Positions 1-61,200 of a DNA stretch of 64,000 nucleotides are shown here, piece by piece. The notes beneath the pieces are model-generated. The model had not been told where the DNA came from. It saw only the letters and a list, made by a program, of their open reading frames with translations, and made no database searches. This DNA is from Selaginella moellendorffii (taxonomy: Eukaryota > Plantae > Lycopodiophyta). Location of the stretch: NCBI RefSeq assembly GCF_000143415.4, contig NW_003314288.1, forward strand, positions 696,642 through 760,641, written 5' to 3'. Numbering within the stretch: the stretch's first letter is position 1; every line of letters starts with the position of its first letter. Made by a program: the position numbers and the translations under genes.

Positions 1-1200
1 CATGGTCTACACACTTCAGAAGTTTCAATACTACCTATTTAGTAACATTCTCAAAAAAATAATCCTCACCAGGAGAATTGCACAATGGTTCTTAGTACTT
101 CAAGAATACAACTTCAAGATCATCTACAAGCTTGGAAGAGAATATGAACACCTAAGCTACATTACAACCGATGGACAACCGAAACACAATATGGATGACC
201 TTCCTGACTCTAATATCCTTTGAATCCACACATCACCAACCTAGATGGACAACATCTACTACTACCTCATAACAGCAACAATACCATGTTGATATTCAAC
301 CTTCGACAAGTGCAAGCAATTTGTCTTGAGGATAAGACCATATTCAGTCGTGGGAAGAAAACTGTATAAACAAGGAAGACACAATATTTTACGAAACTAT
401 GCAAACCCAGAAGAAACACAAGATCTACTAAAAGAACCCTACTATGGACAAATAGGAGGACATTTTGTTGAAGAAATCACAACTCAAAAAATTTTACAAG
501 AAAGACTTTGGTGGCCAACACTTTGGCACAACTAAGCTAAGTTCTATAAAAAATGCAACATCTACCAATAAACCAAGTATGCACCAAAGAAATAAACTCA
601 AGAACTTCATCTAAAAACTCCACTCAAACCTTTTCAATGATGGGGATTCGACTTTGTTAGTCCACTTATGACAAGCTCTAAGCAAAACTAATACATTCTA
701 ATTGCAATAGACTATATGATTAAATAGGCTGAAACTCAATCAATAAAGACTGCTACAACAAAGAATATAACAAAGTTCATCTACAAAAACATCATCACAA
801 GATATGGCTTACTTTGAGAACTCGTCACTGATCAAGGAACACACTTCATCAATGAAACCATCAAGATTCTGACTCAAAAATTCACTATCTAGCACAAGGC
901 TTCAACACCGTACTACCCTCAGGGCAACGGTCAAGCAGAGTCTACAAACAAGGCACTCAAAAACATCCTCATGAAAATCGTGAAAATAAATCAGAAAGAC
1001 TAAGACGATCACATTTATAATGCTTTGTAGGCATATTGAACTGCATATAAAGTTTCAACAAATTCAACACCATTCAAACTCACTTATGGCCTTGAATCTT
1101 TGACACTACTTGAGTACATCATTCCATCATTACAAATGGCAATATAATACGAAATCAACTAAAAAGAATCAATCAAAAGAAGACTAACCATGCTAGGACA
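1..1200 (+). mobile_element. Degenerate Ty3/gypsy pol 3' part (RNase H end and integrase)
   Basis: Remnants RIAQWFLVLQEYNFKIIYK, GGHF...LWWPTL, WGFDFVSP, TDQGTHF, YYPQGNGQAESTNK, with many stops. Near-identical to 53353-54560. Confidence 0.85.
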
Positions 1201-1380
1201 ACTTATTGCTAGCTGAGATCCTTTGACTATCTCGTTTTGAAGCTTTGGAATGCTCAAGGAGTCTTTTCTAACTCAGCAAAGATGTTGCTTCATATGATGG
1301 CCAACGCTAACTATTATCAAACAGTTCTTTTGATAGAGTTATGCAATCTCATGTGCGAGGCACTACTTTGATGATGTCCT

Positions 1381-3900
1381 ATGACTAAGGAGGAACATGA
1401 GATGCATGTGAGGCAAATGTTGCCACTATTGAGGGAGAACAAGCTGTATTCTAAACTGTCAAAGCGTGAGTTCTTCTTGGAGGAGATCACATATCTCGGA
1501 CATGTGGTGCCACGAGATGGTGTGCGGGAATATCCTCAAAAGACTCAGATAATCGTTGACTAGCTTGTTCCCCTTACTATGCATGGGTTTCCTTGGCATG
1601 GTAGGAGTCTTTTGCCGGTTTGTGAAGGACTTCTCCTTGATTGCTGCTCCTTTGATGGATATTCTTCAAAACACCACCAAGCATGCTAAGTTGGTGTGGG
1701 GTGAAAGTGTCAAGAAGCGTTTGAGCAGTTAAAGCAGTCATGTATATTCTACAGATATTTGCTTGTGATAAGCCACTTGTGGTAGAAGGCCAAAGCTCAT
1801 GCTATGGAGTCTATGCGTTCAGAGGTTATGGCTCATGAGTCCTTTTCTCTTTCTGATCCTAGTGAGGCCATGGGTGTCAGTGTGGACCAAGGAGAGAATG
1901 TATCTACTCGTGTTCTAGCTGACACTACTGTCACTAAGCTTTCTGAAGGAGTGAAGAAGAATTGTATCAACTCATCTGAGCTGTACAGTTGTTTGTGCAA
2001 TGAGTTGTGAATAGCCAAGTGCTCAGTGTCCTCTTTGACTCTGGTGCTACGCATACTTTCATTAACAAGGCTAGTGATGAGGGTATAGGAGCTGTCTTGG
2101 TGCAAGACTGCTGTCCTATTGCCTACATAAGCCACAAGTTTGACGCAACTTAGTTGAACTGCCAACTCGGGTGGTAGTTGTTGCAGTCAAAGAGTGGAGG
2201 CATTATCTATATGGTTTGGATTTTTCATGTGGATAACTTTACCACTTGTCACTCTTTTCACTCGCCAGATGGAGCTTTGAGGCCGGCTAGCTCATTGACT
2301 GGAGTTTTTGCAGGAAATGGATGTGCAGACTCCAAATCACCAGAGGGGTTTAAGGTGACAAAAACCGATTTCCCCAGGGATTCCGGAGTAAAAATCAAAG
2401 GGTAATTTTGACCACAGATTACTCATGAATTCGGAAGATTGATGTTTAAAGCAAATTTGCTAGGTTTTCCAAGATCTACAACTTTTCTTTAAGACAATTT
2501 TCCTGTTTCTAAAAGGAGTAGTCAGTAAAGGTGGTTGTTTCTCCATTGTCTAGGATGGTGAACTCTATCTCATTTGGGAAGCTCTCCAGTGGTTTGCTGG
2601 ATGAAATTAAGGAGCTTGCTGACTTCGACTCCTTTGTAATGAAGGCACATGCAGTTGTTTTGAAGGGGGATGCCTCTTCCAATACAATTGTGCTTCCTTC
2701 GATGTATGAGATGGTTTCCTAGTCAAGAGGAATCGGGCTATGGTTCCTAGAGATGATGTTCTAATGCAGTAGATTCTGTAAGAGTGTCTGTTGCACCAAG
2801 TGCAGGACATCAAGGATGTGTGTTTTGGTAGAGACGCATTTATTTTGGCCTAGAATGAAGTCAGGTGTTGATAAGTATGTGCACAGTTGTTAGACCAGCC
2901 AGGCAGTCACAATGGATTGTCAGAAGCATGAAGGTCTCTACTATAGTTAACCTCAGTGGAAGTGGGATAGCATTTTCTATGAGTTTCATAGTAGGCGCTG
3001 TAAGGCAATGATGCTATCTGGGTTGTTGTGGATTGTGTGATGAAGTTGGCTCACTTCTTCCTTGTGAAGACGAATGCTAAGGCTTTTGACCTTGCTCAGC
3101 TGTATTTCTCTATGCTGCTTGAGGATGTTGTAAGTGATTGGGATCCCACGTTCACTTTGGTGTTTTTGCAAACGGTGTTCTAGAAGCTTGAGACAAAGTT
3201 GAGCATGAGCATCCACAGTTATATGGACAAACAAAACGAGTTAATTAGGTGCTGGAAGACATGCTGAGATCGTTTGTTGGTCATCTGAAGAGGCAAGGTA
3301 TTTGGGAGAAGTACCTGCCTTTGTTAGAGATTGCCCATAACTGTGCCTTCCATTTGGCTATTGAGATGGCTTTGTTTATGGCAATGTATGGCTTTCAACC
3401 TCAGTCCCCTGTTGGTATGAACTTGGCTTCTCTTAAGGTGCACCAGGCAAAGGAGTTGGCTGATGAGCATCATCAACACAAGCAGTTTCAGGTTGGAGAC
3501 AAGGTTTTCCTTTGGTTGTCTGAAGCTCAGTGAGCTCTTCAAGGTGGAGGTAGTTCTAAGTTGTCACCATAGTACTGTGGGCCTTGGATTATTCTCAAAC
3601 GAGTTGGAGACCTTGCCTATCAACTAGATTTGCCTAGTGCTGTGCATCCCGTCTTCTATGTAGGAAGTTGAAGGCGTGTTTGCATTCTGGTAATATCTTG
3701 GACCAGTCTGTGATCAAGATTCCAGAGATAGATGTTTGAAGGTTGGCCCTACTTGTGTGTTATAGCAACGGCTAGCGCGCGCACATCGTACAACTTGGAG
3801 AGAGTTACTTGTTCAGTGGAATGGTTAAAATTCATATGATGCTATGGGAAGCTGGGATGATGTTGCTTCCTAATTTTGAGTATGACTTGGATGACATTCT
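1381..3900 (+). mobile_element. Fragmented second Ty3/gypsy (RT end, integrase C-terminus, chromodomain-like tail) mixed with unrelated DNA
   Basis: KEEHEMHVRQMLPLLRENKLYSKLSK...ITYLGHVV (RT). LEDMLRSFV...WEKYLPLLEIAHN...FQVGDKVFL (integrase). YLVQW-like motif near 3807. Confidence 0.7.
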
Positions 3901-4029
3901 AGAGGAAGAGGAGAAGTAGTCGCTTGCTCCTATCCTTTCTTTCTTTTCTGACCCTGTTGATGGCTGGAGGTGTTGTGTCACGTGAGACAGTTAGTGGTTT
4001 TGTTAGCAGGATGCTTTGCTAGCTTCTCT

Positions 4030-5620
4030 CTCCTCAGCTACTGTTCATCATAGTTGGAGCAGAGGGGAAAATGTCACCATATTTCGTGATGAACGAGCTG
4101 ATTCTGGACCTAGGTCTCTGATCAAAGAGCCAAATACCAACTGCAAATTTGCATGGGAAGGTGTTCAAGCATCTCCACGGGGTTTTTATTGCATAGAATA
4201 CACAGAGTTTTGTGAACTGTGAGTCAATCACCAACAGGGATGCTGTCCTGCACAAGAAGCCAGCTTACCTTAGCTTCCACCAGTGTCTTCCACATGTTCA
4301 CAATGTACTTCCGATTCTTCAACTTCCGCATATGCTTGGTGTCAATTTTATCCATCAAAAGCTCTCTGCCATGCTTAGACCTGCACATAAAAAAAGACAC
4401 ACTGAACTCATTACCTTCCCAGGATAACTGAGGCGGATTCTATATAGGATCAGATATAGGTACTCCCCAAACTAGTGTATTGCAGAGCATTCTCCCAGTT
4501 GAACCTTAGGATCCAGTTCAGTGTATTTCCCTCTCTGATGTATCGTCCTGATCCTTTTACCGAAGGCCATCCTGGGAACTGGGACCTCCTCGGGAACTAC
4601 ACATGGAAACAGTGCACCACTGTTATGGGGATAAAAAACAATACCTTGAGGTGATGGGGTTGTTTCCATAACAAAGATGATTTGAGTCTCAGCACCATCA
4701 AGCATTATCCAATCACGAACCTATGATAACTTCAGTTTGTAAAGCAAGATGAAGGTGATCACAAGCAATGCTGCCTTAAGCTTTGATGTGGAGTTTTCAT
4801 CCTGGGTTGTAATGGGTTGTCATGAGGCCATCCGATGAGCAGGGTTTGCTCCAAGTGGACGTTAAACAAATACCTGACTTTACCTTTTTCATTGTATCAT
4901 CTGCTGAGGAAGAAAAACAAGATCCCAACAAGAACCTTGCTGTAAGTGATGGCTTTCTAGCTCTTTGTAGATCCAATAAGTCTTTGATCGAAGCTCCCAC
5001 ATTTCTATGCCACCTAGGCCAAAAACCTCTACCCAAGCCTGGAGCTGAATAATCACCTATATACTGTTGATTACTGTTCTTACGCGCTACGTTGAAGAAC
5101 AAGCGATCAGCTAATGCCTCTGTCAGATGGTCTGGTTCTTTCTGACTTAACCTGGGTAGGAGTGTGACTTCCATATCTTCAACATCTCTTTTGCTATTCC
5201 ATCCTAGACCTTCTTTGTGTTGAGAGGAGCAGTGCCAATTGATTCCTTGTTTCTAGTTACCACTCTGTTTAGGCAAGATCTTCTGCAGCTGAGCTCTGAA
5301 GAGGAGGTGCCAGCTCTGGTTTCGTGAATATAAACCTGACACAAGCACTTTGAATAGAAGAGCTTTGGATTGAATTCCTGGGTGTGGCACATTCCAAATA
5401 ACTGAATTCCACTCTACTTTTTCCCAGACTTTGCACCTGCTGGAGTTTCTAAAGTTTCTACATATGTTGTTGGTGATCAAGTGTTGGTGAGTTATCGGGT
5501 GTTGAGGATCCAAGGTTTTTGCTGCGTAGGTCCTTATCACATCGTCCAACAAGTTGGTCCACAAATCTATGTGGTGACACTCAATGCACAACATCAAGAG
5601 AAGATCCATGTGAAGCGGTT
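4030..5620 (-). mobile_element. Non-LTR (LINE-like) retrotransposon remnant
   Basis: Minus-strand remnants with a zf-RVT-like pattern (W...K.SWLL...C.LC....E.LEHL...C) near 4140-4310 and W-rich C-terminal pieces. Heavily decayed. Confidence 0.4.
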
Positions 5621-5648
5621 AGCTCGATATTGTGTGTGAACGGATTGA

Positions 5649-6259
5649 TGTAAGGATTCTACCATATATTCTATGGTAGATATAGATAAACTCAACAAGA
5701 TTGGAATACAAATTTTTTTTAATAATAATAAATTAACAATTTTTAATGTGTATTTATGGAGCCCACAAGAGTAGGAGTGAAATTATGAATCCCACATTAT
5801 TTATATGCTCATATGATCCTGAGGTTTAGGGATATGAGGGAGTAAGTTTTATGGCCCAGGTAAGTTAGAGGGAGGAAAAAAAAGAATTAATTAGAGTGAA
5901 AATACGAGTTATTGTGAAATTAGAGTATAAATGTGAGTTAAGAGTTAACACGAGCTAAGAGTAAAAACGTGATGTAGCAGTTTAAAAGAGGGAAGTAAGA
6001 ATGCTCGGATGGAGTTCCACCAGGTAGAAAAGACAAGTCATACCTCAAGCCTCGGATTGCTCTCACCCGGTTGCCTACTTTAACCAAGCAGCAGTCTTGG
6101 CGCACAGGGATGACATCAACCTCTTGCTCCACTGCTCCTACTTCTGAGCTGCTAGCAGCTTCTCCCCTCCTTAAAAAAAAAGGTCTGTTGTTCTCTTGGA
6201 GTTCAAGAAGCATCCTCTTCACTGTCTCCTCTGTTTTTGCTAGCTAGTTAGCTCTTACA
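5649..6259. mobile_element. Possible LTR (TGTAAG...CTTACA termini)
   Basis: 6-bp terminal inverted repeat typical of LTR ends, also present in the duplicate near 57467-58113. No target-site duplication seen. Confidence 0.35.
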
Positions 6260-6364
6260 AGAAGGAGCACAAGCCAAGTTCAGCTCCATGCTCAGCTCTA
6301 TCATCTCCTCTTTAAGACACCTCACCTCTTTGAAGCCATTCAGGAGAGCTAGCACGCTTCACGT

Positions 6365-7000
6365 CTAGACGTCCCCTCCTTTTTTTCTTTGTGCGATTGT
6401 CTCTTCAAACTCATCATACTTATTTAACTCACCAAAGCTTACCAAGCCGAGTGCAGGTTTTGAAACCCCATGAGTCACCTTGGCCTTTTTCCATCTTCCA
6501 GTTGAGCTCTCCAACAATCTTGACGTGCGGATGCGTGCAAACTGCTCCTTGAGCCAGGACCATTTCTCCAGGAGATAACTTATGCTACAACACTCTCCGC
6601 TCGACGATCTCAATGTGGAAAGATCCACAAAACTGTCCCACTCATCATAGTTGTAGAAGAAATCATCCTCATACTGCATCTGCAACCTTGCTCGAGCCCA
6701 AGCCTCCACCATCGCAAGCTTCTCCCTCATCTTGATCAGCTCACACTTGAGGCGGCAAAACAAGTCCAGGTCCTGAGGAACAACAATGGAATACACCTTT
6801 CCTGGGTACCTGTCTTGAAACCTGTGAAAGTACAGTGGACGATGTGGTGTTTCAGATCGCAGCAGAATGATAACTTGATGAAAGCAACAAAACCATCAAG
6901 CTCGCTCTTTGGGGATCAATTATCATCTCCTCCTTTGAAGCAATGAGCAGCAGGCCTTGATCGCATCCAGAAGTACTAGAGATAGTCTGCAAAAGCAAGT
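6365..7000 (-). CDS. Hypothetical multi-exon gene of unknown function (5' end uncertain)
   Basis: 143-aa open terminal exon, plausible splice acceptors at about 6822 and 6987, and a donor at about 6893. No recognised domain. Confidence 0.3.
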
Positions 7001-7806
7001 TTGACACCAGTTATTTTGGCAACACAGAAGAAAAAGAAGAAAAATAAACTCAAGTTTCAAAATTTATAGAGATCCATACAATCCAAATCAAGATCAATCC
7101 TCCACGAACTTAATGCCGCTTTCAGCACCTCCAAGCTCTGCCGAAAAACGTAGCCACGGTATGCCACAATCGTTCGCTTGAAAATCTGAAGATGTCAATC
7201 GAAGCATGCAAGCAAAAACACGAAGTAAAGAAGTGCAGGTGGACAACAAAGGAGATGAACTGAGCAAGGCCAAGAACACATATAAGGACTGAATGTAAGC
7301 ACATGAGGCCTCGTGCGGTTTTTTCCTCTGTGCGTGGCTTCATGTGCGAAGAGTTTGGTGTGGTAAGGTATGATGCAGAGCAGCCAGAAGCCCAGGGTGA
7401 GGTTTTACCACCGCCCGAGGACTCCTGTGCATGGGCCCTGGGCGAGAGTCATTTGCGAAAGTGTTCTGCATGAAACTGGTGCCCTGAGGCTTCTGGCCGC
7501 GTGGCCCCATGAAGAGCATTTTTTATTTAATTTGTGTAGAGTGTGGTTTATTTTTGCATATTGAGTGTATCGATATCTTTTAGATTGAGAACTGAAGACT
7601 ATATTGAACTGAAGATTCTTCAGCTCTTGAGCAACTGATTGCTGCTGGCTCACTTTCTATATATATCAAAGAGATTTTTTTTAAACAATAAACATCTAAG
7701 CTGCTGCAGATAAGCTGTGACATTGTAAAGTTTAAAAAGGAAAAGAATTAGAAAAAGAAAAAACAGAAAACACGAGCATTTTACTACTAATCGGGATTTC
7801 TAGGGC

Positions 7807-10800
7807 ATGCGTGCGGCGCTAGGGTTTGTGTGGTGTGTGTCATTTCTCAACAATCTCATGGAGTGGAAAACGTTTTTCAGGGATCCCACTTTCTGGTGGG
7901 ACAACAGGTTCAAGAAGAAAAACAAGTTCTTCTCAGAGTCCTACCCGGATTTCAAACATGTTTCTACCGGAGAGAGCCTGTGGATCGCCAACAGGAAAAC
8001 ACCGACCTGGGTCTCTGCAAAACTCGAGTCGCTCGCTGACCCAGCTGTAGGTAAGGCCACCACGGCTCGCTACAAATCTCCACATACCCCACCTGTAGCT
8101 GGTGATGAACCGGTGAGTTTAGGGAGGCTGATACACCGCGTGAGAGACTCAGCTGAGAGCAGATCCCTTTCTTTGGGAAAACAAGCCCATGAAGCTGTGC
8201 TCAAGAGTGATGAGCACAAAAGCAACATCTACTTGTTGACGGGATTGATCGATATGTACTGCAAGTGTGGCGAGCTTAAGGAGGCTCGCAAGATTTTCGA
8301 CTCCATGGGAACCCGGAGTGTTGCGTCCTACAACGCGATCATCCAGGGCTGCGGCTCGAACGGGCAAGCTGAACTTGCTCTGGAGTACTACTCTGCTCTG
8401 AGAGCTTGTACCACCATTCAACCCAACGATCGGACACATGTCGCGGTGATCAGCGCCTGCTCCAGACTTGCTACCGAATCCAGCGAGAAGAGGGAGAGAG
8501 CTCTACGCATCGGGATGGAGATCCGTTCAATGCTGAGCAAGGAGAAGAAACAGCTAGATCTGTTCGTGGCGACTTGCCTGGTAGACATGTACTGCAAGTG
8601 TGGCGAGCTTGAGGAGGCTTGCAAGATTTTCCACTCCATGGGAACTCGGAGTGTTGTGTCCTACACCGCGATCATCCAGGGCTGCAACACGAACGGGCGA
8701 GCTGAACTTGCTCTGGAGTACTACTGTGCCCTGAGAGCTTGTACCACCATTCAACCCAACAATCGGACTCATGTCGCGGTGATCAGCGCCTGCTCCACAC
8801 TTGCTACCGAATCCAGCGAGAAGAGGGAGAGAGCTCTACGCATCGGGATGGAGATCCATTCAATGCTGAGCAAGGAGAAGAAACAGCTAGATCTGTTCGT
8901 GGCGACTTGCCTGGTAGACATGTACTGCAAGTGTGGGGAGCTTGAGGAGGCTCGCAAGATTTTCGACTCCATGAGAACTCGGAGTGTTGTGTCCTACAAC
9001 GCGATCATCCAGGGCTGCGGCTCGAACGGGCAAGCTGAACTTGCTCTGGAGTACTACTCTGCCCTGAGAGCTTGTACCACCATTCAACCCAACGATCGGA
9101 CACATGTCGCGGTGATCAGCGCCTGCTCCAGACTTGCTACCGAATCCAGCGAGAAGAGGGAGAGAGCTCTACGCATCGGGATGGAGATCCATTCAATGCT
9201 GAGCAAGGAGAAGAAACAGCTAGATCTGTTCGTGGCGACTTGCCTGGTAGACATGTACTGCAAGTGTGGCGAGCTTGAGGAGGCTCGCAAGATTTTCCAC
9301 TCCATGGGAACTCGGAGTGTTGTGTCCTACAACGCGATCATCCAGGGCTGCGGCTCGAACGGGCAAGCTGAACTTGCTCTGGAGTACTACTCTGCCCTGA
9401 GAGCTGATAACACCATTCAACCCGACGATTGGACACATGTCACGGTGATCAGCGCCTGCTCCACACTTGCTACCGAATCCAGCGAGAAGAGGGAGAGAGC
9501 TCTACGCATTGGGATGGAGATCCATTCAATGCTGAGCAAGGAGAAGAAACAGCTAGATCTGTTCGTGGCGAATTGTCTGGTAGACATGTACTGCAAGTGT
9601 GGCGAGCTTGAGGAGGCTTGCAAGATTTTCCACTCCATGGGAACTCGGAGTGTTGTGTCCTACACCGCGATCATCCAGGGCTGCAACACGAACGGCCGAG
9701 CTGAACTTGCTCTGGAGTACTACTCTGCCCTGAGAGCTGATAACACCATTCAACCCGACGATCGGACTCATGTCGTGGCGATCAGCGCCTGCTCCACACT
9801 TGCTACTGAATCCAGTGAGAAGAGGGAGAGAGCTCTACGCATTGGGATGGAGATCCATTCAATGCTGAGCAAGGAGAAGAAACAGCTAGATCTGTTCGTG
9901 GCGAATTGCATGGTAGACATGTACTGCAAGTGTGGCGAGCTTGAGGAGGCTCGCAAGATTTTCCACTCCATGGGAACTCGTAGTGTTGTGTCCTACACCG
10001 CGATCATCCAGGGCTGCAACACGAACGGGCGAGCTGAACTTGCTCTGGAGTACTACTCTGCCCTGAGAGCTGATAACACCATTCAAGCTGATGCTTGCAC
10101 CTACACCTGCGTCCTTGTTGCTTGCGGGAGTGTGATGGCGATCAAGCTCGGGAGGGAGATTCACCAGCTGGCGAAGCATAAAGGGCTGCTGAAAAACAAT
10201 CCAGTTCTGGGCTCCAGCCTGGTGAGCTTCTACGGCAAATGCGGCGATGTTGATTCTGCTCAGGAAGCGTTTGACGAGTGCCGAGCTCGGGACGACACGG
10301 GTCTCTGGAACTCTCTCATACAGGCTTACACTCTCCAGGGCCGATCGATCGAGGCCTTGGAGCGTTTCTATTCCATGACTCAGGAGGAGGGCTGTAAAGC
10401 TGACGATGTGAGTTTTGTCTCGGTGTTGAACGCTTGCAGCCATGGTGGTCTGGTCGGGAAAGGAAGGCAGCTTCTGGATGAAATGCCCAAGCAGTATGGA
10501 GTCAAGCCACGTCTGGAGCATTATGTGTGCCTGATTGATATGCTCGGGCGAGCTAACCTCCTTGACGAAGCTGTGAGAGTTCTCAGAGCCATGCCTTTTG
10601 AACCGGATGCAGTGGTTTGGACGTCCCTGCTCGGAGCCTGCCGGAAGTGGAAGAATTACACGATCGGCAAACTCGCGTTTGAGCGTCTTGTGGAGATGGA
10701 TCCCAAGAGTGACACGCCCTACGCATTGATGGCCAATATATTTGGAAACCTGGGGATGCTCAGTGAAAGGGCTGCTGTTGTGGAGAGAAAGAGAGGTGAA

Positions 10801-11229
10801 GGCAGCTTCAGGGAGCCCGGGAGAAGCTGGTGGACGGATGTTAGCTCAGGAAAAGTGCATTCTTTTTCTGTCGGGGATAGGAGTCACTCACAGAGCGACG
10901 AGATTGCGGCCAAGCTCAAGCAATTGTTGCTGAGAATGAAAGAGGAGGGGTACGCGAGTGCTGTGATCAACGTTCTAAAAGACATACCCGAGGAAGAGAA
11001 AGAGGATCACCTGTGCGGCCACAGTGAGAAGCTTGCGCTGGGGTGTGCCCTGGTGAACTCGCACCAGAAGGAGACCATCAGAATTGTGAAAAATCTCCGA
11101 GTTTGTGATGATTGCCATGCGGCCACTGCTCTCATCTCTAAGCTGGAAAAAAGGCTAATCATCTGCAAAGATGCCAGTCGGGTTCATGTGTTCCAGGATG
11201 GCAGATGTTCCTGTGACAACTACTTTTGA
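7807..11229 (+). CDS. PLS-class PPR-E1-E2-DYW RNA-editing factor (DYW:WW type) with N-terminal OSB-type PDF motif
   Basis: Intact 1140-aa ORF. aa 20-73 match the PDF motif (WxxFF...WWDNR..K....YPDFKH..TGESLW.....PxWV). About 23 P/L/S motifs, then E1/E2, PGRSWWTD box, HSEKLA, CDDCH, ending SCDNYF. Confidence 0.95.
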   Translation: MRAALGFVWCVSFLNNLMEWKTFFRDPTFWWDNRFKKKNKFFSESYPDFKHVSTGESLWIANRKTPTWVSAKLESLADPAVGKATTARYKSPHTPPVAGDEPVSLGRLIHRVRDSAESRSLSLGKQAHEAVLKSDEHKSNIYLLTGLIDMYCKCGELKEARKIFDSMGTRSVASYNAIIQGCGSNGQAELALEYYSALRACTTIQPNDRTHVAVISACSRLATESSEKRERALRIGMEIRSMLSKEKKQLDLFVATCLVDMYCKCGELEEACKIFHSMGTRSVVSYTAIIQGCNTNGRAELALEYYCALRACTTIQPNNRTHVAVISACSTLATESSEKRERALRIGMEIHSMLSKEKKQLDLFVATCLVDMYCKCGELEEARKIFDSMRTRSVVSYNAIIQGCGSNGQAELALEYYSALRACTTIQPNDRTHVAVISACSRLATESSEKRERALRIGMEIHSMLSKEKKQLDLFVATCLVDMYCKCGELEEARKIFHSMGTRSVVSYNAIIQGCGSNGQAELALEYYSALRADNTIQPDDWTHVTVISACSTLATESSEKRERALRIGMEIHSMLSKEKKQLDLFVANCLVDMYCKCGELEEACKIFHSMGTRSVVSYTAIIQGCNTNGRAELALEYYSALRADNTIQPDDRTHVVAISACSTLATESSEKRERALRIGMEIHSMLSKEKKQLDLFVANCMVDMYCKCGELEEARKIFHSMGTRSVVSYTAIIQGCNTNGRAELALEYYSALRADNTIQADACTYTCVLVACGSVMAIKLGREIHQLAKHKGLLKNNPVLGSSLVSFYGKCGDVDSAQEAFDECRARDDTGLWNSLIQAYTLQGRSIEALERFYSMTQEEGCKADDVSFVSVLNACSHGGLVGKGRQLLDEMPKQYGVKPRLEHYVCLIDMLGRANLLDEAVRVLRAMPFEPDAVVWTSLLGACRKWKNYTIGKLAFERLVEMDPKSDTPYALMANIFGNLGMLSERAAVVERKRGEGSFREPGRSWWTDVSSGKVHSFSVGDRSHSQSDEIAAKLKQLLLRMKEEGYASAVINVLKDIPEEEKEDHLCGHSEKLALGCALVNSHQKETIRIVKNLRVCDDCHAATALISKLEKRLIICKDASRVHVFQDGRCSCDNYF
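8251..10086 (+). repeat. About 5.5 tandem copies of a 333-bp unit encoding one S-P-L PPR triplet (31+36+44 aa)
   Basis: DMYCKCGEL recurs at about 8251, 8584, 8917, 9250, 9583 and 9916. Units are near-identical at DNA level. Confidence 0.97.
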
Positions 11230-12019
11230 AAACATGTCAGTGCTCTTTCTTGCAGTTATCCCTGGTTTTAAACCCACCGTGAGTCGAGCAGAAACATGGG
11301 CCGCTGAGTGAGCATGCCTCGTCAAAGTACCGCCGTCAACCTGAACTTCACGGAGAAAAAAATAACATTTAAAAGTTAAAACTATGCAAAAGGAGGATGA
11401 CACGTTGTCTTAAATTTAAATTTCTTTTTGGTAGCAGAATCGGCTGGCAAGTCTTCATACTAGGGCTTATTATCTGAATCTGGGTGCTCTGTTTTGGGGC
11501 ACCTTTTGGCAGGTTTAGTCAGCATTCCTACCCAAACTTGAAGGGGTCATGCGAGACGGCAAGTTTGGCCACACGTATTCATCATGCCGCAAGCCGCCAT
11601 CACCTTGCTCCCAGAACATGAGGCTGCACTTGCTATCAGCAAAGACTTTGGGTTTGTGCTCCTAGAGCACGTTGAAGACGTGTGGAAGCTGGTGATGACA
11701 GCATTTGTTTCTTGCAACATACTCACGAGTTCCTTGGTGACATCTTCCTTCCAGATTTTTTGAGCTTGTCGTGAGTGGTGACCTGCTTGCTCTCTCCTGT
11801 GACGACTTCTTCCAGCCTCTGGTGCCCAACCTCAAGGCTCTCTTGTGGATGGAGCTAGCCCTACACAGTGTGTGTGTGTATCAACCAGCAGATGCACAAA
11901 TTGATGTCGATGCTGGTGCCAATGATGGTGCCGATGGAGTTGCGGAGGTTTGGACCATGGAAGATGTTGTTCACGAGCTGCAAGCCCTTAATAAAAATTA
12001 GCAAGAGATGTAAGACAAG

Positions 12020-51200: not shown

Positions 51201-54200
51201 AAGAATACAAACTCAAAGTCATGAAAAAAGACAAGAATCAAGAACTTACCAAAGTACTCAAGAAAGTTACAATCAAGAACGAATTTAAACAAGGAATATG
51301 GTGTATGAAATGCAAGAAAAAAGGACACATCCTAATAAAGTGTAAAGTACTGATTCCTAAGTGTCAGATTTGTAAAAAGGAAGGATATATAGCAAAGATC
51401 TGTCGATACAAAAGAGCAACTAAAGTCACATGAGTCAAGAACATACCTTGAACTCTTATACCAACTAGAAGACATTACAATCAACCCAAACAAGAACCAC
51501 AACAATTGTAGCTAAACTACCACAATCAAGGTACATATAATCCTAACCCTAGATATCATCAATAATACAACAATGGCAACCAAGACAATTAGTATCAGCA
51601 ATCATACTAACAAGTTTATCAGCAGCCTTATCAAGACAATTAACAATGGAGACCACCACCCCGGCAAAACAACTATCAACAACAGTACCACAATAATCGA
51701 CAATGGCGACCACCTCTGCAACAACTAAACTATCAATAGCAAAATAAACAATATGATCCACCACCCAGAGTATTTCCTCGCAACAACCATCAATAGCAAC
51801 CTCAAACTCAAAAAATCCGACCCCAATACCAACAACATCAAAATCAAGGAAATTAACCTCCTCAGCAAAATCACCAACATTGAAGAGCTCCTCCAACAAC
51901 AAGAAATGTCAACATCGATTAAATCGAAGATGAACACTTTGAAGATGAACCTGAGGTAAGAGCTCTAATTCAAAGTCAGAAAAAACACTAGACTCCTGAA
52001 GATGACCTTGAGGAAAAGTCAAAGAACAAAAACTCCAAGACAAAGTGCAAGAAATATCATGGCATGAATGGCAATAAAGCAAGGAGCTAGTCAACACAAT
52101 TCAGCAAACCCTTCAACAACAACAACCTGAAGTTAAAGATGATCAAGAAATTGTGACTAAAACTCTGTCAAGAAAAGAGGAACAACCAAAGCTTATCACC
52201 AACATTCTTCAACAAGGTATCATATTCACCCTTCTAAAACTTTTACAAGTAGTTTCATACTTGAGAAAACAACTTCTCAAGATATGTCAAGCTTCTCCAC
52301 CAAAAAACTTCAGCTTAAGTTAAGAAAAAAACCAATAACTCATCCCATAAGGCAAACATCCAACCTAGCGACTATGATGAAGATGTACCATACATCCCAA
52401 TCTTCCCAATTCAAAATCCAAAATGGCTATCACCACTAGTCATTGTCCCCAAGAAGAACAACAAGCTTAGGATTTATGTCAACTATAAGAAGCTCAATAA
52501 TACAACTCAAAAGGACACCTTTTCAATTCCATTCTCTAATGAAATTCTTGATGCAGTTGTAGAATATGAGATGTACTCCTTTCTCAATGGCTTTAGTAGA
52601 CACAATCAAGTACATATTGCACCTGAAGATCAACATAAGACGGCTTTCATCAATCCATGGGGAGCATACGCTTACCTTTGTATGCTTTTTAGTCTCTCCA
52701 ATGCACCATTCATGTTTCAATGGATCATCACTGATATTTTTCAAGAATACCTCACTAAATTTATGTGAGTATTTATGGATGACTTCAGTGTCTTCAGCAA
52801 CAAAGAAGATCATCTCCAATTCTTAGAAAAATGCTTTATCAAATGCTATGAACACAATATCACATTGAACCCTGATAAGTGCATTTTCTTCGTCAAATCA
52901 GGAATTCTACCTAGACATGTAGTTTTCAAAGAAGGAATCCTCATTGACAAGGACAAGACCCTCACAATCACCAACATACAACATCCATTCAACATTTCAA
53001 GCCTTCAATCATTCCTTGGCAAGATGGGATACCATCGAAGATTCATCAAAAACTACGCCAAAATTGCAAAACCCATCACTGAACTCCTCAAGAAGAATCA
53101 AGCTTACAACTAGACTCAAGATTGTCAAAACGCCTTTATCAACCTCAAGAATTCCCTCACCCAAGCTCCAATATTTGCTCAACCAAACTGGAACAAAGAC
53201 TTCAACATCCAAATCAATGCCTCCAACTACACCCTCAGTGTGATCATTTTGCAACAACAAAAAGATCATAAAAACCGACCAATCTACTATGCAAGTTGAA
53301 GACTCAACTCAGCCAAAATGAACTATACTACAATTGAGAAAGAAGCTCTAGCAATGGTCTACACACTTCAGAAGTTTCAACACTACCTACTCGGTAACTT
53401 CCTTTAACTTTTCAACAAAACGATCCTCACCGGCAAAATTGCACGATAGTTCTTACTACTTCAAAAATACAACTTCGAGATCATCTACAAGCCTGGAAGA
53501 GAACATGAACACTTAAGCTGCATTACAGCCAATAAATAATCAAAACACAATATGGACAACTTTCCTGACTCCAATATCCTTTGAATCCATACATCACCAA
53601 CCTAGATGGACAACATCTACTACTACCTCACAATAGCAACAATCCAAGTTGATATTCAACCTCCGACAAGTGCAAGCAATTTGTCTTGAGGATAAGACCA
53701 TATTCAGTTGTGGGAAGAAAACTGTACAAACAAAGAAGACATAACATTTTACGAAGATGTGCAAACCTAGAAGAAACACAAAATCTACTTAAAGAAACCT
53801 ACTGTGGACAAGAGTAGAAGGACATTTTGCTGAAGAAATCACAACTTGAAAAATTTTACAAGCAAGACTTTAGTGGCCACCACTTTGGCACAACTAAGCT
53901 AAGTTCTATAAAAAATATAACATCTACCAATGAACCAAGTATGCACCAAAGAAATAAACTCAAGAACTTCATCTAGAAACTCCATTCGAACCTTTTCAAT
54001 GATGGGGACTTGACTTTGTTGGTCCACTTATGACAAGCTCCAAGCAAAACTAGTACATTCTAATTGCAATAGACTATATGACAAAATGGGCTAAAACTCA
54101 ACCAATAAAGACTGCTACAACAAAGAACATAACAAAGTTCATCTACAAAAACCTCATCACAAGATATGGCTTACCTTGAGAACTTGTCACTGATCAAAGA

Positions 54201-54560
54201 ACACACTTCATCAATGAAACTATCAAGATTCTAACTCAAGAATTCACTATTCAGCACAAGGATTCAACATCATACTACCCTCAAGGCAATGGTCAAGTAG
54301 AGTCTACAAACAAAACACTCAAAAACATCCTCATGAAAATCATGAAAATAAATTAGAAAGACTGGGACGATTACATCTACAATGCCCTGTAGGCATATCA
54401 AACCGGCCATATAACGTTTCAATGAATTTGACATCATTCAAGCTCGACCGACGGCCTTGAAGCTTTAACATCACTCGAGTACATTGTTCCATCACTACGA
54501 ATGGCAATACAATATGAAATCAACCAAGAAGAATTGATCAAATGAAGACTAGCCATGCTA
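48276..54560 (+). mobile_element. Degenerate Ty3/gypsy element (gag with two zinc knuckles, RT, RNase H, integrase)
   Basis: CMKCKKKGH...C and CQICKKEGY...C knuckles. W.SPLVIVPKKN.KLRIYVNY.KLN, YSFLNGFS...QV.I...DQHKTAF, FMDDFSVF, RNase H and integrase as in 1-1200. 5' boundary uncertain. Confidence 0.85.
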
Positions 54561-57500
54561 AAACAACTTATTGCTAGCTGAGATCCTTTGACTATCTCGT
54601 TTTGAAGCTTTGGAATGCTCAAGGAGTCTTTTCTAACTTAGCAAAGATGTTGCTTCATATGATGGCCGAGGCTAACTATTATCAAACAGTTCTTTTGATA
54701 GAGTTATGCAATCTCATACGCGAGGCACTACTTTGATGATGTCCTACGACTAAGGTGGAACATGAGATGCATGTGAGGCAAATGTTGCTGCTATTGAGGG
54801 AGAACAAGCTGTATTCTAAACTGGCAAAGTGAGTTCTTCTTGGAGGAGATCACCTATCTCAGACATGTGGTGCCACGAGATGGTGTGCAGGAAGATCCTC
54901 AAAAGACTCAGATAGTCATTGACTAGCTTGTTCCCCCTACTGTGCATGGGTTTCCTTGGTATGGTGGGAGTCTTTTGCCGGTTTGTGAAGGACTTCTCCT
55001 TGATTGCTGCTCCTTTGATGGATATTCTTCGAAACACCACCAAGCATGCTAAGTTGGTGTGGGGTGAAAGTGTCAAGAAGGGTTTGAGTGGTTAAAGTAA
55101 TCATGTATATTCTACAGATATTTGCTTGTGATAAGCCACTTGTGGTAGAAGGCTAAGGCTCACGCTATGGAGTCTATGTGTTCAGAGGGCATGGCTCATG
55201 AGTCCTTTTCTCTTTCTGATCCTAGTGAGCCCATGGGTGTCAATGTGGACCAAGGAGAGAATGTATCTACTCATGTTCTAGCTGACACTGCTGTCACTAA
55301 GCTTTCTGAAGGAGTGAAGAAGAATTGTATCAACTCATCTGAGCTGTACGGTTGTTTGTGCAATGAGTTGTGCATAGACAAGTGCTCAGTGTCCTCTTTG
55401 ACTCTGGTGCTACACATACTTTCATTAACAAGGCTAGTGATGAGGTTATAAGAGCTGTCTTAGTGCAAGACTGCTGTCCTATTGCCTACATAAGCCACAA
55501 GTTTGACGCAACTTAGCTAAACTGCCAACTCAGGATAGGAAGTTGTGTGTTGTAGTTGTTGCGGTCAAAGAGTGGAGGCATTACTTTACCACATGTCACT
55601 CTTTTCACTCGCCAGATGGAGCTTCGAGGCCGGCTAGCTCATTGACTAGAGTTTTTGCAGGAAATGGATGTGCAGATTCCAAACCACCAGAGGAGTTTAG
55701 CTCTGGGGTTTAAGGTGATGAAATAAAAGTCAAAGGGGAATTTTGACTGGATGTGTAAAGAAAAGTTGCTAGGTTTTCCAAGATCTACAACTTTTCTTTA
55801 AGACAATTTTCCTGTTAGACAGTAAAGGTGGTTGTTTCTCCATTGTCTAGGATGGTGAACTCTATCTCGTTTGGGAAGCTCTCTAGTGGTTTGCTGGATG
55901 AAATTAAGGAGCTTGCTGACTTCAACTCCTTTGTAGTGAAGGCAACGTGTAGTTGTTTTGAAGAGGGATGCCTCTTCCAATGCAATTGTGCTTCCTTCAA
56001 TGTACGAGATGGTTTCCTAGTCAAGAGGAATCTGGCTATGGTTCCTAGAGCTGATGTTCTTTTACAGTGGCTTCTGTAAGAGTGTTTGTTGCACCAAGTG
56101 CAGGACATCAAGGACGTGTGTTCTGGTAGAGACACATTTGGTAGAGACACACCTACCATAGTTAACCTCAGCAGAAGTGGGATAGCATTTTCTATGAGTT
56201 TCATAGTAAGCACTTCAAGGCAATGATGTTATCTGGGTTGTTGTGGATTGTGTGATGATGTTGGCTCACTTCTTCCTTGTGAAGACGAATACTAAGGCTT
56301 TTGAACTTGCTCAGCTGTTTGTCTTTATGGGCTGCCTAAAGATGTTGTAAGTGATAGGGATCCCACATTCACTTTGGAGTTTTGGCAGATGGTTGTTAGA
56401 TTTAATTCGACTTTTGTATATAACCGTTCTAGAAGCTTGAGACAAAGCTAAGCATGAGCATCCACAGTCAGATGGACAAACAAAACGAGTTAATTAGGTG
56501 CTAGAAGACATGCTGAGATCGTTTGTTGGTCATCTGAAGAGGCAAGGTATTTGGGAGAAGTACCTGGCTTTGTTAGAGTTTGCCCATAACTGTGCCTTCC
56601 ATTCGGCTATTGAGATGGCTCCGTTTATGGCAATGTATGGCTTTCAACCTCAGTCCCTTGTTGGTATGAACTTGGCTTCTCTTAAGGTGCACCAGGCAAA
56701 GGAGTTGGCTGATGAGCATCAGTCCACTGCTGAGGAAGAAAAACAAGATCCCAACAAGAACTTTGCTGTAAGTGATGGCTTGCTAGCTCTTTGTAGATCC
56801 AATAAGTCTTTGATCGAAGCTCCCACATTTCTATGCCACCTAGGCCAAAGACCTCTACCCAAGCCTGGAGCTGAACAGTCACCTATATACTGTTGATTAC
56901 TGTTCTTATGTGCTACGTTGAAGAACAAGCGATCAGCTAATGCCTCTGTCAGATGGTCTGGTTCTTTCTGACTTAACCTGGGTAGGAGTGTGACTTTAAT
57001 ATCTTTAACATGCTATTCCATCCTGGACCTTCTTTGTGTTGAGAGGAGCAGTGCCAATCGATTCCTTGTTTCTAGTTACCACCCTGTCTAGGTAAGATCT
57101 TCTGCAGCTGAGCTCTGAAGAGGAGGTGCCAGCTCTGGTTTTGTGGATATAAACCTGACACAAGCACTTTGAAGAGAAGATCTTTGGATTGAATTCCTGG
57201 GTGTGGCACATTCCGAATAACTGAATTCCACTCTACTTTTGCCCGGACTTTGCACCAGCTGGAGTTTCTAAAGTTTCTACATATGTCGTTGGTGATCAAG
57301 TGTTGGTAAGTTATCGGGTGTTGTGGATCCAAGGTTTTTGCTGCATAGGTCCTTATCACATCGTCCAACAAGTTGGTCCACAAATCTATGTGGGGCACTC
57401 AATGCACAACATTAAGAGAAGATCCATGTGAAGCGGTTAGCTCAATATCGTTTGTGAATGGATTGATGTAAGGATTCTACCATAAATTCTATGGTAGATA

Positions 57501-58200
57501 TAGATAAACTCAACAAGATTGGAATACACTAACTTTTTAATAATAATAAATTAACAATTTTTAATGTGTATTTATGGAGCCCACAAGAGTAGGAGTGAGG
57601 TGTTATCATATTATGAATCCCAGAAGATCAAGAGTGAGAGGTGTTAATCACATTATTTATATGCTCCATATGATCCTGAGGTTTAGGGATATGAGGGGGG
57701 CCCAGGTAAGTTAGAGGAAGGATAAAAAAGAATTAATTAGAGTGAAAATTCGAGTTATTGTGAAATTAGAGTATAAATGTGAGTTAAGAGTTAACATGAG
57801 CTAAGAGTAAAAACGTGATGTAGCAGCTTAAAAGAGGGAAGTAGGAATGCTCAGATGGAGTTCCGCCAGGTAGAAAAGACAAGTCATACCTCAAGCCTCA
57901 GATTGCTCCCAACCCCCTGCCTCCACCCGGTTGCGTACTTTAACCAAGCCCCAAACCACCCAGCAGTCTTGGCGCACAGGGATGACATCAGCCCTAACCT
58001 CTTGCTCCACTGCTTCTCCCCCCCTTAAGAAAAAAGGTCTGTTGTTCTCTTGGAGTTCAAGAGGCATCCTCTTCACCGTCTCCTCTGTTTTTGCTAGCTA
58101 GTTAGCTCTTACAAGAGAGCACAAGCCAAGTTCATCTCCATGCTCAGCTCTATCATCTCCTCTTTAAGACACCTCACCTCTTTGAAGCCATTCAGAAGAG
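53353..58200 (+). repeat. Segmental duplication copy 2 of 1-6348
   Basis: Colinear high identity. Ends abruptly where the Mutator-like element begins. Confidence 0.95.
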
Positions 58201-61200
58201 CGGGCGCGGACCATATTTGAGCTCACGAGTTGAGCTCAATTTTCAATTGTAATTTAGTACAAACATTATAAATTTTAAAATTTTAAGGTTATGGCAAACC
58301 TAATAATTTAATAACTCTCTATATATTATATAGATAAAAATGTTCTAAAGAACACTTTTTGTTCTAATAATTTAAATATTTACTACATGCAATGATAGGG
58401 ATATTTGTTAGAACATAAAATAAAATGTTTGCAAAAAGAGTATTCTTGTCACTTCTTTAAATTTGTACTCTATGCTTTCTGGCTAGTAAATGTCAGGTTT
58501 GTCAGAATTAAAAAATTATTAAATTTGAAATAAGATTCTATGTAAAGCCATATAACCGTTTGAAAGGAAAAAAAAAGAACCATTGATGTAAGCTTCTTGC
58601 ATATAAAAGAAAGACTTGGTTCTTTGTAAAATACATTCTTGAGGGGTTTGTCATAGCATACTGTCTAGAATTTATTGATCTTCATTCACACTCTCATTCG
58701 CAAAAAGGGAAATACACACAAATGTTTATGGGTTCTAGTGTTGGTAATTTTAACTTTCATAATCTTTCTTCCCAGGGTTCAAGGGCTAGGAGATGTAATA
58801 ACTATCCCATTACACAGCATAACCAAATCACACAAGAGAATGAAAGAGAGGATAGTGAGGATAGTCATCATGAGTTGGAGATAAATGCAATGACAGAGGG
58901 TGCAACAAATTGAGTGAAAAAGAATGCCCTTTTACTTGTTTTAGAAAAGTGCAATTCTGCCACTTTCAAGAAGTGCCCCATATGTTTTTTAGTGTCTGGT
59001 GGAAACAATGGCAATGATCAGTATGATGGTATATATGCTCTTGCGACACACTGCAATATCACGCACCCGAAAAACTACCATGAATTTTTTTTTGAGATGG
59101 TAAAGACAGAAATGGAGACACACGAGCACTATGGGCAGTATTGCGAAAAGAATACTCAGAAGCATATAAAATGAAAAGTGAAATGAAAAAGCACATTTTT
59201 ATTAATTATATAAAGTATAATAAGTTTTATTGATAGAGAATAAACATCGATAGTGTTGGAGAAATCTAATTAGCTCCAAAAGTTTTCTGCAACTAAGCAA
59301 TAGTAAGGCTTGCTTGGTGTATATGAATATCCACTTTAGGAGCCTGGTCCAAGATGTTGATGAAGATGTAGTACATATGCTTGCAAGGAGCATATGCCTT
59401 CCCATATTCCTCATGCTTCGTAAAGTCTGGACATGTGTAAGAAGGAAAGTCGTGAATGACAATTGTGTACTCTCTGCCTTCTGTTTTGACTATGTACTCC
59501 TTTGCAAGCGCAGTGATGTACTTCATAGAGAGAATCTCACACTCAAGTGTTTGAGCCAAGGTTATTTGACCTTGCTTCTGCTTGGAGATGGTACCAATAA
59601 ATTTAATTGCCTTACCTTTTCGTGCTGGGCTTCTGTGCATCTCTATAGGAATAGTCCTACTCCTGTCACTCATGTCTCCAACTCTCCTCTCAAGATTAAA
59701 ACCAAATTTCTCAAGGTTTTCAATCTCATCCGAGGTGAGCGTGACCCCATTAGCAACAGGCCATTCTTTAGGTACTGCATCAGGTTTAGTCACTATAGTG
59801 TCTTCAATCCGCTTCGTATGGTTGGCGTCGGTGTTGCAACAATATAGCCAACACCATCTTGAAAATCCTACTTGCTTTCGTTCCCCATAGAAACATGGGG
59901 TTGGAATAGAAGCAGATTTTCACCACGAATCTAGGCCCAACACTTGCCCCTCGGAAGCATCCCCACACACCTTACATTCGATTTTGCTGGCACGCGTCGG
60001 ATTGCCCATTGCTTCGGCTCCACGCTATGGTAAGCAATTTCAACCTGTTGCGATGCACTCTCTTCATCAGCCACTTGAGGTGGCTCAGTCTGAGAGCAGT
60101 GTCTTGGAGCAGAATGGTACTCGACATCAGGCTTGTGAGAGCTTTTTGCTCCAAGGTCCATACCAACATCTTCCCCAGCAAAGGAAAAACGATGCTTTGA
60201 GTAGACAGTCTTCATATCACCAATAGAAGCTCGGGGAGTGTACTCTATAGATGTGCTATGGACCACTTCCTCAACTGCAGTTGCCATTGTTTGAGCGGGT
60301 GGAGTTAATTTTCTCTTCATCCTATCATGTAACATCTCAATAGAAGGCCCTATTCCCATGTATCTTCCTTCCTTGAATGCTAGTGCTTTCGAAGATTGCT
60401 CTATAGCACGTATTAAATTTGATAGACAGGCTTCATATAGACTCATCTTCCCTTTCTCTGCCTCAGAGGAACGCCAACTCTAATGCTTACTTTCAGAGAG
60501 ATTCACAGTTAGGGTGTATGCGAGGTGCTCAAGTGGTTGATCCTAATGGAAAAGGCAATATTAAGAGGTAATAAAAGGAGAAGAAAAAATATAAACCAAC
60601 CTGAAAAGAGTGATGTCCCCACTGGAACATCCTAACTTCCCACCATCCTAACCATGACTCAAGTTGTGGTAGGCAACTTACGTCTGTATGGCCATCTTCA
60701 TGCCACCACATTCGAATCTCGTTTGCTTTTGCCTCATGCTCTTCTTTAGAAGGTGCAACCTGCCATTGTTTGCACAACTCCTTAAATATTGATTGAAACT
60801 CTGGCTTGATTAGGTGGCAATGCTGGTTTAAGCTTTGAGCCCAATGGAACTCACAAGTCCTCTCACGACCTTCCAATAGTTGACCATTCCCAAAAATTGC
60901 TCGGATACCATTCCAGTTTGCACTAGCCCCATCTGCCATGAAATCACGAAAGTTTGCAGGCTTACCAGTCCGCTTTAGGACAATATCAGAGAGGGACTTC
61001 CAAAATATTTCCTATGTTGTCTGGTTTTGTACTTTAAACTCTACTATCGCAATTGTTAAGTTACAATATAGCCTATGAAAACATAAATATTATAACAATT
61101 TCAATATAATGAGAATAAAAATTACCTTGGATCATACACATGAGTTCCCATGGTTGTCTAACCAAATACACGCTCCATATGGTCAAAATGTACCCATGCA

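Follow-up and report, generated by a model that had tools for sequence, protein, structure and literature searches.

Pentatricopeptide repeat (PPR) editing factors of the PLS class that end in E and DYW domains, such as Physcomitrium PPR56 (PMC10482289) and DOT4 (PMC6424221), are the described systems closest to the gene analysed here, an intronless open reading frame (ORF) at positions 7807-11229 of a 64,000-nucleotide stretch of the Selaginella moellendorffii genome (contig NW_003314288.1, positions 696,642 to 760,641; this whole stretch is hereafter the window). The window protein shares with these editors the alternating P, L and S motifs, the E1 and E2 motifs, and a DYW deaminase domain with the HxE and CxxCH motifs; its gene lacks introns, as most PPR genes do, and its predicted fold resembles that of the synthetic PPR-DYW/RNA complex 9kfx. 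It differs from them in having interior triplets that are about 95% identical rather than highly diverged, a repeat unit of 111 amino acids (aa) rather than about 101-103, and a PDF-like head. We report evidence that the 333-bp units coding for these triplets exchange two blocks, each of which holds one of the two residues that set the base preference of a P motif.

Lengthening of a PLS tract has been described for DOT4 of Poaceae, which has six extra N-terminal PLS repeats (PMC6424221). As in the window gene, the lengthening is distal and consists of whole triplets with canonical code residues, but the extension in Poaceae is old, fixed and diverged, whereas the family to which the window gene belongs varies in unit number and its units are still exchanging. 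In the fast-evolving P-class clusters of Restorer-of-fertility-like (RFL) genes, intra- and intergenic recombination gives rise to new combinations of motifs, as in radish Rfo (PMC2848758) and barley RFL (PMC7380019). RFL proteins have no deaminase and no near-identical tandem motifs, and their exchange is mainly between paralogous genes; the window protein carries L, S and E motifs and a DYW domain, which places it outside the RFL group. Repetitive PPR tracts in DYW proteins are also known from the same organism in the monotypic S-motif arrays of Selaginella (PMC8809517), but these are runs of 31-aa S motifs, whereas in the window an S-P-L triplet is repeated. Thus the domain family, the recombination-driven evolution of Rf-like PPR genes (PMC2848758) and the extension of PLS tracts by triplets in DOT4 (PMC6424221) were already known. 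Our full-text literature search returned no description of near-identical, exchanging PLS triplet arrays, although an earlier one may exist.

Modular arrays outside the PPR family offer further comparisons. Transcription activator-like (TAL) effectors are also built of near-identical modules, with two residues per module setting base preference and with modules reordered and altered in number by recombination. However, they are of unrelated fold and origin, consist of repeats of 33-35 aa that vary at residues 12 and 13 alone, and bind DNA, whereas the 111-aa window unit would read three RNA bases and varies commonly at 19 positions, four of them code positions, rather than at two. None of the 24 Pfam matches of the window protein was to a TAL repeat family, and the label TALE-like, given to the array when it was first read from the sequence, is kept here as an analogy only. 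PRDM9 zinc-finger arrays and the fungal HNWD WD40 repeats (PMC1805685) are minisatellite-like coding arrays too, and share with the window array the in-register gain and loss of units, mosaic units, fixed ends around variable interiors, and variation that takes in contact positions; they differ in fold and ligand, and the variation in unit number seen here is among paralogues.

The 333-bp array and its code residues

Tandem Repeats Finder reported a single array, at 8254-10086, with a period of 333, 5.5 copies, 95% matches, 0% indels and a score of 3267. A 33-base anchor was found six times, at 8254, 8587, 8920, 9253, 9586 and 9919, in exact 333-bp steps (0 expected in shuffled sequence), and all units share the reading frame of the ORF. 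Direct reading showed that each 111-residue unit is a triplet of an S (31 aa), a P (36 aa) and an L motif (44 aa). The L motif (unit codons 59-102, for example 8428-8559) exceeds the usual 35-36 aa and includes a charged ESSEKRERALRIG segment, which was placed by an AlphaFold2 (AF2) model in an unusually long second L helix of 20 residues.

Position 5 of the P motif is N, T, N, N, T and T in the successive units (codons 8332 AAC, 8665 ACC, 8998 AAC, 9331 AAC, 9664 ACC and 9997 ACC), and the last P position, at 8425+333k, is N, N, N, D, D and D. Position 5 of the S motif is T, T, T, T, N and N (codons 8239, 8572, 8905, 9238, 9571 and 9904). The P residues belong to two blocks of linked changes. 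In the 5' block, haplotype A (N..GSNGQ) and haplotype B (T..NTNGR) differ by five linked base changes at P5, P12, P13 and P16; in the 3' block, haplotype X (ACTTIQPN) and haplotype Y (ADNTIQ[P/A]D) differ by four at P30, P31 and P36; all of these changes are nonsynonymous. The units are arranged in the order AX BX AX AY BY BY. The sequence-only reading had listed the six P motifs with their exact spacing and position-5 codons, the two pairs of haplotypes with their order and their pairs of fifth and last residues, and the change of the S motif from T to N in the last two units; the repeat finding, the anchor and the reading of the ORF reproduced every one of these, the S change by the codons at 9571 and 9904.

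In the PPR code, T or S with N specifies A, T or S with D specifies G, N with N or S specifies a pyrimidine, and N with D specifies U (as cited in PMC6424221). From this code the distal tract of the window protein is predicted to read a-Y-n a-A-n a-Y-n a-U-n C-G-n C-G-n, in which n stands for an L motif and lower-case letters for the T/S pair, whose reading is uncertain. New base specificities are accordingly a prediction of the code, and the reshuffling of code residues would alter which RNA is bound or edited.

Exchange between units

All four combinations of A or B with X or Y occur in the window, from which exchange between units, with crossover in the AELALEYY stretch, had been proposed at first sight. 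The window array alone failed the four-gamete test: of the 105 pairs formed by 15 informative sites, 42 were incompatible, the minimum number of recombination events (Rm) was 3, and the exchange intervals fell at unit columns 113-154, 172-183 and 183-258. When 45 units of the family were pooled, 52 informative sites gave 427 incompatible pairs out of 1326 and an Rm of 18, and a permutation test like that of the pairwise homoplasy index showed that adjacent sites were more compatible than permuted ones (p=0.01). Incompatibility was still present in 343 of 703 pairs when only intact genes were used and identical units were dropped.

Linkage disequilibrium places the exchange between the two blocks. 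Within the blocks r2 was 0.68-0.84 (P5-P12-P13-P16) and 0.91-1.0 (P30-P31-P36), in contrast to 0.00-0.02 between them, across an invariant 40-bp stretch that codes for AELALEYYSALRA and returns every 333 bp (at 8700, 9033, 9366, 9699 and 10032 after its first occurrence). This bears out the crossover placed in AELALEYY, and the 40-bp stretch is probably the main zone of exchange. Over 56 units, the combinations of P5 and the last P position were TD in 18, TN in 14, ND in 12 and NN in 11 (r2=0.0005); the two code residues of the P motif are in linkage equilibrium across these units, and they assort freely in the family into all four base preferences. The four block combinations were found both in the window and in the independent Sanger assembly of the species (v1, GCA_000143415.2), from which the sister loci L001-L012 were taken. 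Column 183, a synonymous site, varies with A/B despite its location 3' of the X/Y patch, and therefore X/Y in the window array looks like a conversion patch of less than 70 bp.

Comparisons of the units across loci showed that window units are closer to units of other loci than to those of their own array, and that the 5' and 3' halves of a unit often differ in their nearest relative. Window unit 2 has the same 5' half as L002 unit 4; the 5' half of unit 4 is identical to that of unit 3 in the plus-strand copy at L007, and its 3' half is nearest to unit 2 of the minus-strand copy there. Mean differences were similar within arrays (15.9) and between arrays (17.6), and therefore the module types are common to the family and are not homogenised gene by gene. 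We regard exchange between units as the only reasonable reading of these data, and it may have occurred between paralogues as well as within arrays.

Linkage did not decrease steadily with distance. The block of the last P position shows moderate linkage (r2=0.36) with S5, at a distance of about 150 bp, and none with the P5 block, which is just 40 bp off; an intervening L32-S3 block is independent of both the last P position and S5.

A young family with arrays of different length and order

A word search with the whole protein retrieved relatives of 36-43% identity only, because the public models of the family are too short for the length window of the search. With the C-terminal 380 aa, twelve S. 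moellendorffii proteins of 78-99% identity were retrieved, all of them short or oddly spliced models, and a word search with four units returned no close array-only proteins. The v1 assembly contains no fewer than 14 sister copies, whose arrays range from 0.5 to 8.5 units in length and differ in unit order. The window gene is therefore one member of a young multi-copy S. moellendorffii family of at least 15 copies; of the young recombining editor suggested by the sequence-only reading, the exchange stands and the single gene does not, and both unit number and unit order, named there for comparison among paralogues, differ among the v1 loci.

Eight frames, including that of the window, are intact, with 4, 5, 5, 5, 6, 7, 7 and 9 unit starts, and the final unit is always partial; among the full units of the family, 45 of 47 are exactly 333 bp long. 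The order of units is different in every copy, for example AX AY BX BY BY BY BY in L001, AX AY BX BX AY BY BY in L002 and AY AY BY BY AY in L003. By contrast, the ends are fixed: every family member starts with an A-type unit that has D at S25, and nearly all end in a partial unit of type B. Such fixed ends with variable interiors are the expected product of in-register unequal exchange. Two arrays carry perfect duplications, one of 999 bp in the minus-strand copy at L007 (units 3-5 identical to units 6-8) and one of 333 bp in L009 (unit 3 identical to unit 4). In the closest pair of genes, L001 and L003, the C-terminal part is 99.6% identical, yet the arrays are unlike. The predicted distal string differs in every intact copy.

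The public v1 models retrieved for the family (P0121-P0131 and P0154) are cut short or contain predicted introns that skip parts of the array, and a 617-aa model, for example, sits on a 1246-codon open frame in L001. Models cut or mis-spliced in this way probably hide the family from whole-protein searches, and the retrieved models expose a problem of annotation over such arrays. Locus L007 (GL377592.1:909825-933974) holds two family members head to head. Most members of the family keep the PDF-like head, which is lost in L001.

Proposed mechanism and alternatives

We consider it probable that the locus holds a minisatellite-like coding array in a PLS-class PPR-DYW gene, the units of which are exchanged and the code residues reassorted; the evolutionary mechanism is supported and its functional consequence plausible. 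Misaligned exchange in register, by unequal crossing-over or replication slippage, would gain or lose whole units in 333-bp steps or in multiples of them, 999 bp being one; every unit codes for a single S-P-L triplet, predicted to read three bases of RNA. Within units, crossing-over or gene conversion over short tracts, mostly in the invariant stretch coding for AELALEYYSALRA, would reassort two older dimorphic blocks, of which one holds P position 5 (N or T) and the other holds N or D at the last P position. In this way, each member of the family would come to carry its own string of NN, TN, ND and TD P motifs, together with TS or NS S motifs, in the distal part of the tract that binds RNA, and the proximal motifs, E motifs and deaminase would remain conserved.

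Several results weigh against this reading. Array units have a ratio of nonsynonymous to synonymous diversity (piN/piS) of 0.85 at a piS of 0.059, which is near neutral. Common variants of the units are 21 nonsynonymous to 3 synonymous, as opposed to 58 to 39 for rarer ones (p=0.015), and this excess drops to p=0.075 when only intact genes are used and identical units are removed. Several family members, at least five, are broken or 5'-truncated. A firm code is lacking both for L motifs and for the T/S pair in S motifs. The number and order of units in the window rest on the assembly: the 24 sequencing runs were searched as Logan contigs, which span the unique parts and stop within every unit, as they do at any branch beyond a 31-base word; unit column 143, immediately ahead of the X/Y sites, is one such break. 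Twenty runs of one organism contain about 60% of the sampled words of the stretch and none contains more, and contigs from paralogues 95-99% alike also fall on the stretch, so that their support is at the level of the family. Moreover, no allele of the window copy was seen among L001-L012, where the identity of the upstream flank was never above about 96%.

Some of these figures fit a rival account, which we judge distinctly less probable though not slight, in which the exchange is real but functionless, the array being near-neutral padding or the family decaying, and code reshuffling is a by-product of repeat instability. The near-neutral diversity of the array, the weakened excess of nonsynonymous variants and the broken copies all suit it. 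Distal PPR motifs usually matter less for target choice than proximal ones, which we also count in its favour. By motif, piN/piS is 1.34 in P, 0.69 in S and 0.64 in L. An enrichment of variation at code positions, which the sequence-only reading had raised, appeared in the family, where the 19 commonly dimorphic residues include four of the six code positions (S5, P5, the last P and the last L position; p=0.008, at linked sites); it is modest, and in the window array alone, where variation extends beyond the code residues to 21 of 111 residue positions, three of the six code positions are included (p=0.08). Selection on code residues in this family is thus suggestive only.

Against a functionless array stand its open frame and the conservation of the rest of the gene. 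There are no stops in 14,985 nt of array and no nonsense changes among 121 variant alleles (p about 0.01-0.02 under neutrality), and of the 47 full units a single one is frameshifted. Among the eight intact copies, identity over the C-terminal 1140 nt is 97.2-99.6%, and these 380 codons, with a piN/piS of 0.30 and a piS of 0.039, are under purifying selection. The piS of the units is above that of the C-terminal part, and therefore the unit types are at least as old as the gene copies. In addition, unrelated near-identical PLS arrays have four or five of the six code positions among 11-21 variable columns, which is hard to obtain by drift alone.

That the mosaic is an artefact of assembly, from collapsed or mis-joined near-identical units, alleles or paralogues, is very improbable. 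At least 15 paralogous copies 95-99% alike are a hard case for assembly, no run holds more of the words of the window copy than stated above, and the v1 assembly has a gap within the L004 array. However, the two blocks lie only 93 bp apart within a unit and are phased by any read type, so that the four-gamete result is independent of unit order; an artefact could touch the order or count of units and not that result. All four combinations also occur again in the independent Sanger assembly at more than 10 loci, and the window array has exact 333-bp spacing within an intact frame of 1140 codons.

The least probable alternative is that the combinations arose by repeated parallel substitution under selection on code residues, for although P5, the last P position and S5 are each one base change apart and like toggles recur in unrelated arrays, the blocks consist of five and four linked changes, mostly at non-code residues (P12, P13, P16, P30 and P31; r2 0.68-1.0), the synonymous column 183 also follows A/B, and separate loci have identical half-units in common.

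Near-identical triplets in other taxa

Near-identical motifs within a PPR protein had been taken as atypical on first reading. Near-identical PLS triplets are not rare: of 239 PPR proteins retrieved, in a set biased by the repetitive query, at least 12 from other taxa have adjacent 101-aa triplets that are at least 90% identical. These include proteins of Diphasiastrum complanatum (P0037) and Balamuthia mandrillaris (P0044) and of European Nucleotide Archive (ENA) assemblies (P0017, P0021, P0045 and P0056), and one of Sphagnum magellanicum (P0039) falls just short of the threshold at 89%. These seven are unrelated PPR-DYW proteins with four to seven adjacent PLS triplets of 100 or 101 aa that are 89-100% identical over the best 70 residues. 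In P0017, P0021, P0037 and P0045 the variable columns number only 11-21 and take in four or five of the six code positions (p=1.4e-4 to 3e-3); the differences are concentrated out of proportion at position 5 and the last position. The recurrence of this pattern elsewhere lends weight to the functional reading and makes the locus less unique.

We hold it possible, though rather unlikely, that in-register exchange of PLS triplets is a general, selected route to new editing specificities. If so, a lineage with thousands of editing sites would maintain families of editors alike in their fixed proximal reader and their deaminase, and the distal tract would be continually re-dealt from a few modules covering all four bases (NN, TN, ND and TD). 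Diphasiastrum, Sphagnum, Balamuthia and other taxa would share this process, and young triplets there would differ mainly at code positions. One survey counted 3,861 PPR genes in S. moellendorffii (PMC13386178). With lycophyte PPR editing factors in the thousands, duplication, loss and recombination of modules would offer a testable birth mechanism for new site specificities. In nature the arrays parallel the synthetic PPR editors now engineered from consensus repeats, and sister genes, differing chiefly in the order of their modules, are suited to testing what distal PLS motifs contribute to target choice.

Transcription of the family

In transcriptome-sized runs, contigs extend across the gene; a loose end at 7793 and, at 11254, a poly(A) end come from a single run. 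The loose end presumably derives from the Nanopore cDNA strand-switch primer, which it matches. The two ends fit an intronless transcript of about 3.5 kb. The family is transcribed, and transcription is assigned to the family rather than to the window copy because the paralogues are 95-99% alike. Differences of about 1% in the flanks were at one point read as another allele; that reading was withdrawn, since contigs of paralogues 97-99% alike lie on the stretch too.

Two transcriptome-sized runs (X2 and X10) match the window from 7833 on and are unlike it before that point (...CCAATTATATATAT), one contig extending about 1.5 kb further. There is no AG acceptor at the 7833 junction, which may reflect a paralogue or allele with another upstream region, or an alternative 5' exon.

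Gene layout and flanking sequence

The ORF matched the Pfam families PPR_2 (4.5e-87), PPR (1.6e-81) and PPR_1 (8.2e-53), followed by E_motif (4.1e-8, aa 950-1008), Eplus_motif (8.8e-6, aa 1017-1044) and DYW_deaminase (1.3e-30, aa 1048-1139, profile positions 1-92 of 93). The zinc-binding motifs of the deaminase are in place, with HSE at aa 1072-1074 for HxE and CDDCH at aa 1100-1104 for CxxCH, and the C terminus is DNYF, so that the final tripeptide is NYF and not DYW. From this domain order the protein is a candidate organellar C-to-U editing factor. A single-sequence AF2 model of aa 100-482 (predicted local distance difference test score, pLDDT, 83) consists of helix pairs, six helices per unit; its best match in the Protein Data Bank is 9kfx_A, a synthetic PPR-DYW protein in complex with RNA (E=1e-17), and next come designer PPR proteins, the PLS-type 5iww_D among them.

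The PDF-like head begins after 17 residues with the pattern WWDNR...PDFKH..GE.LW, and the Pfam search of the protein gave no match for it. We take it to resemble the PDF motif of plant organellar single-stranded-DNA-binding (OSB) proteins. Similarity among repeats starts at about 8251, within the first S motif. The features of the gene and its sister loci are listed in Table 1.

Table 1 Features of the window gene, and sister copies in the v1 assembly
Feature	Position	Strand	Details
Intronless ORF, 1140 codons and stop	7807-11229	+	PDF-like head, PLS-type PPR array, E1/E2, DYW deaminase; ORF list and Pfam
PDF-like N-terminal motif	7858-8013	+	WWDNR 7894-7908, PDFKH 7945-7959; read directly; outside the repeat finding
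Unique L-type PPR motif preceding the array, aa 103-140	8113-8226	+	Direct reading; AF2 helices H6-19 and H22-33
First nine residues of first S motif, IYLLTGLID	8227-8253	+	Position-5 codon ACG (T) at 8239
Unit 1, AX	8254-8586	+	P N/N (predicted pyrimidine); following S5 = T
Invariant 40-bp stretch between A/B and X/Y blocks, columns 114-153	8367-8406	+	Codes AELALEYYSALRA; no informative site inside
Unit 2, BX	8587-8919	+	P T/N (predicted A); following S5 = T
Unit 3, AX	8920-9252	+	P N/N; following S5 = T; 7 bases off unit 1
Unit 4, AY	9253-9585	+	P N/D (predicted U); following S5 = N; mosaic
Unit 5, BY	9586-9918	+	P T/D (predicted G); following S5 = N
Partial unit 6, BY	9919-10092	+	S and P only; repeat ends 10086; last P codon GAT (D) 10090-10092
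Unique C-terminal PPR motifs L, S, P2, L2, S2	10093-10653	+	Kept among paralogues; direct reading
E1 and E2 (E+) motifs	10654-10938	+	Pfam; PG box PGRSWW at 10816-10833
DYW deaminase domain	10948-11226	+	Pfam; HSE 11020-11028, CDDCH 11104-11118; ends DNYF
L001			7 unit starts; full-length open frame
L002			7 unit starts; full-length open frame
L003			5 unit starts; full-length open frame
L004			5 unit starts, gap inside array; full-length open frame
L005			4 unit starts; full-length open frame
L006			2 unit starts
L007, plus-strand copy		+	6 unit starts; frameshifted before DYW domain
L007, minus-strand copy		-	9 unit starts; intact frame
L008			5'-truncated, without array
L009			5 unit starts; full-length open frame
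L010			5'-truncated, without array
L011			3 unit starts; frameshifted
L012			1 and 4 unit starts

About 6 kb upstream of the gene (window 2-6349) is repeated directly at 53354-58201, about 51 kb downstream, with about 87-96% identity and without a PPR gene behind it. The region at about 2700-7583 was duplicated together with the gene in most v1 loci (91-95% identity) and contains minus-strand ORFs without a Pfam match in the v1 annotation. An antisense ORF at 9886-10521 (211 aa) was set aside as a chance ORF opposite a GC-rich coding region.

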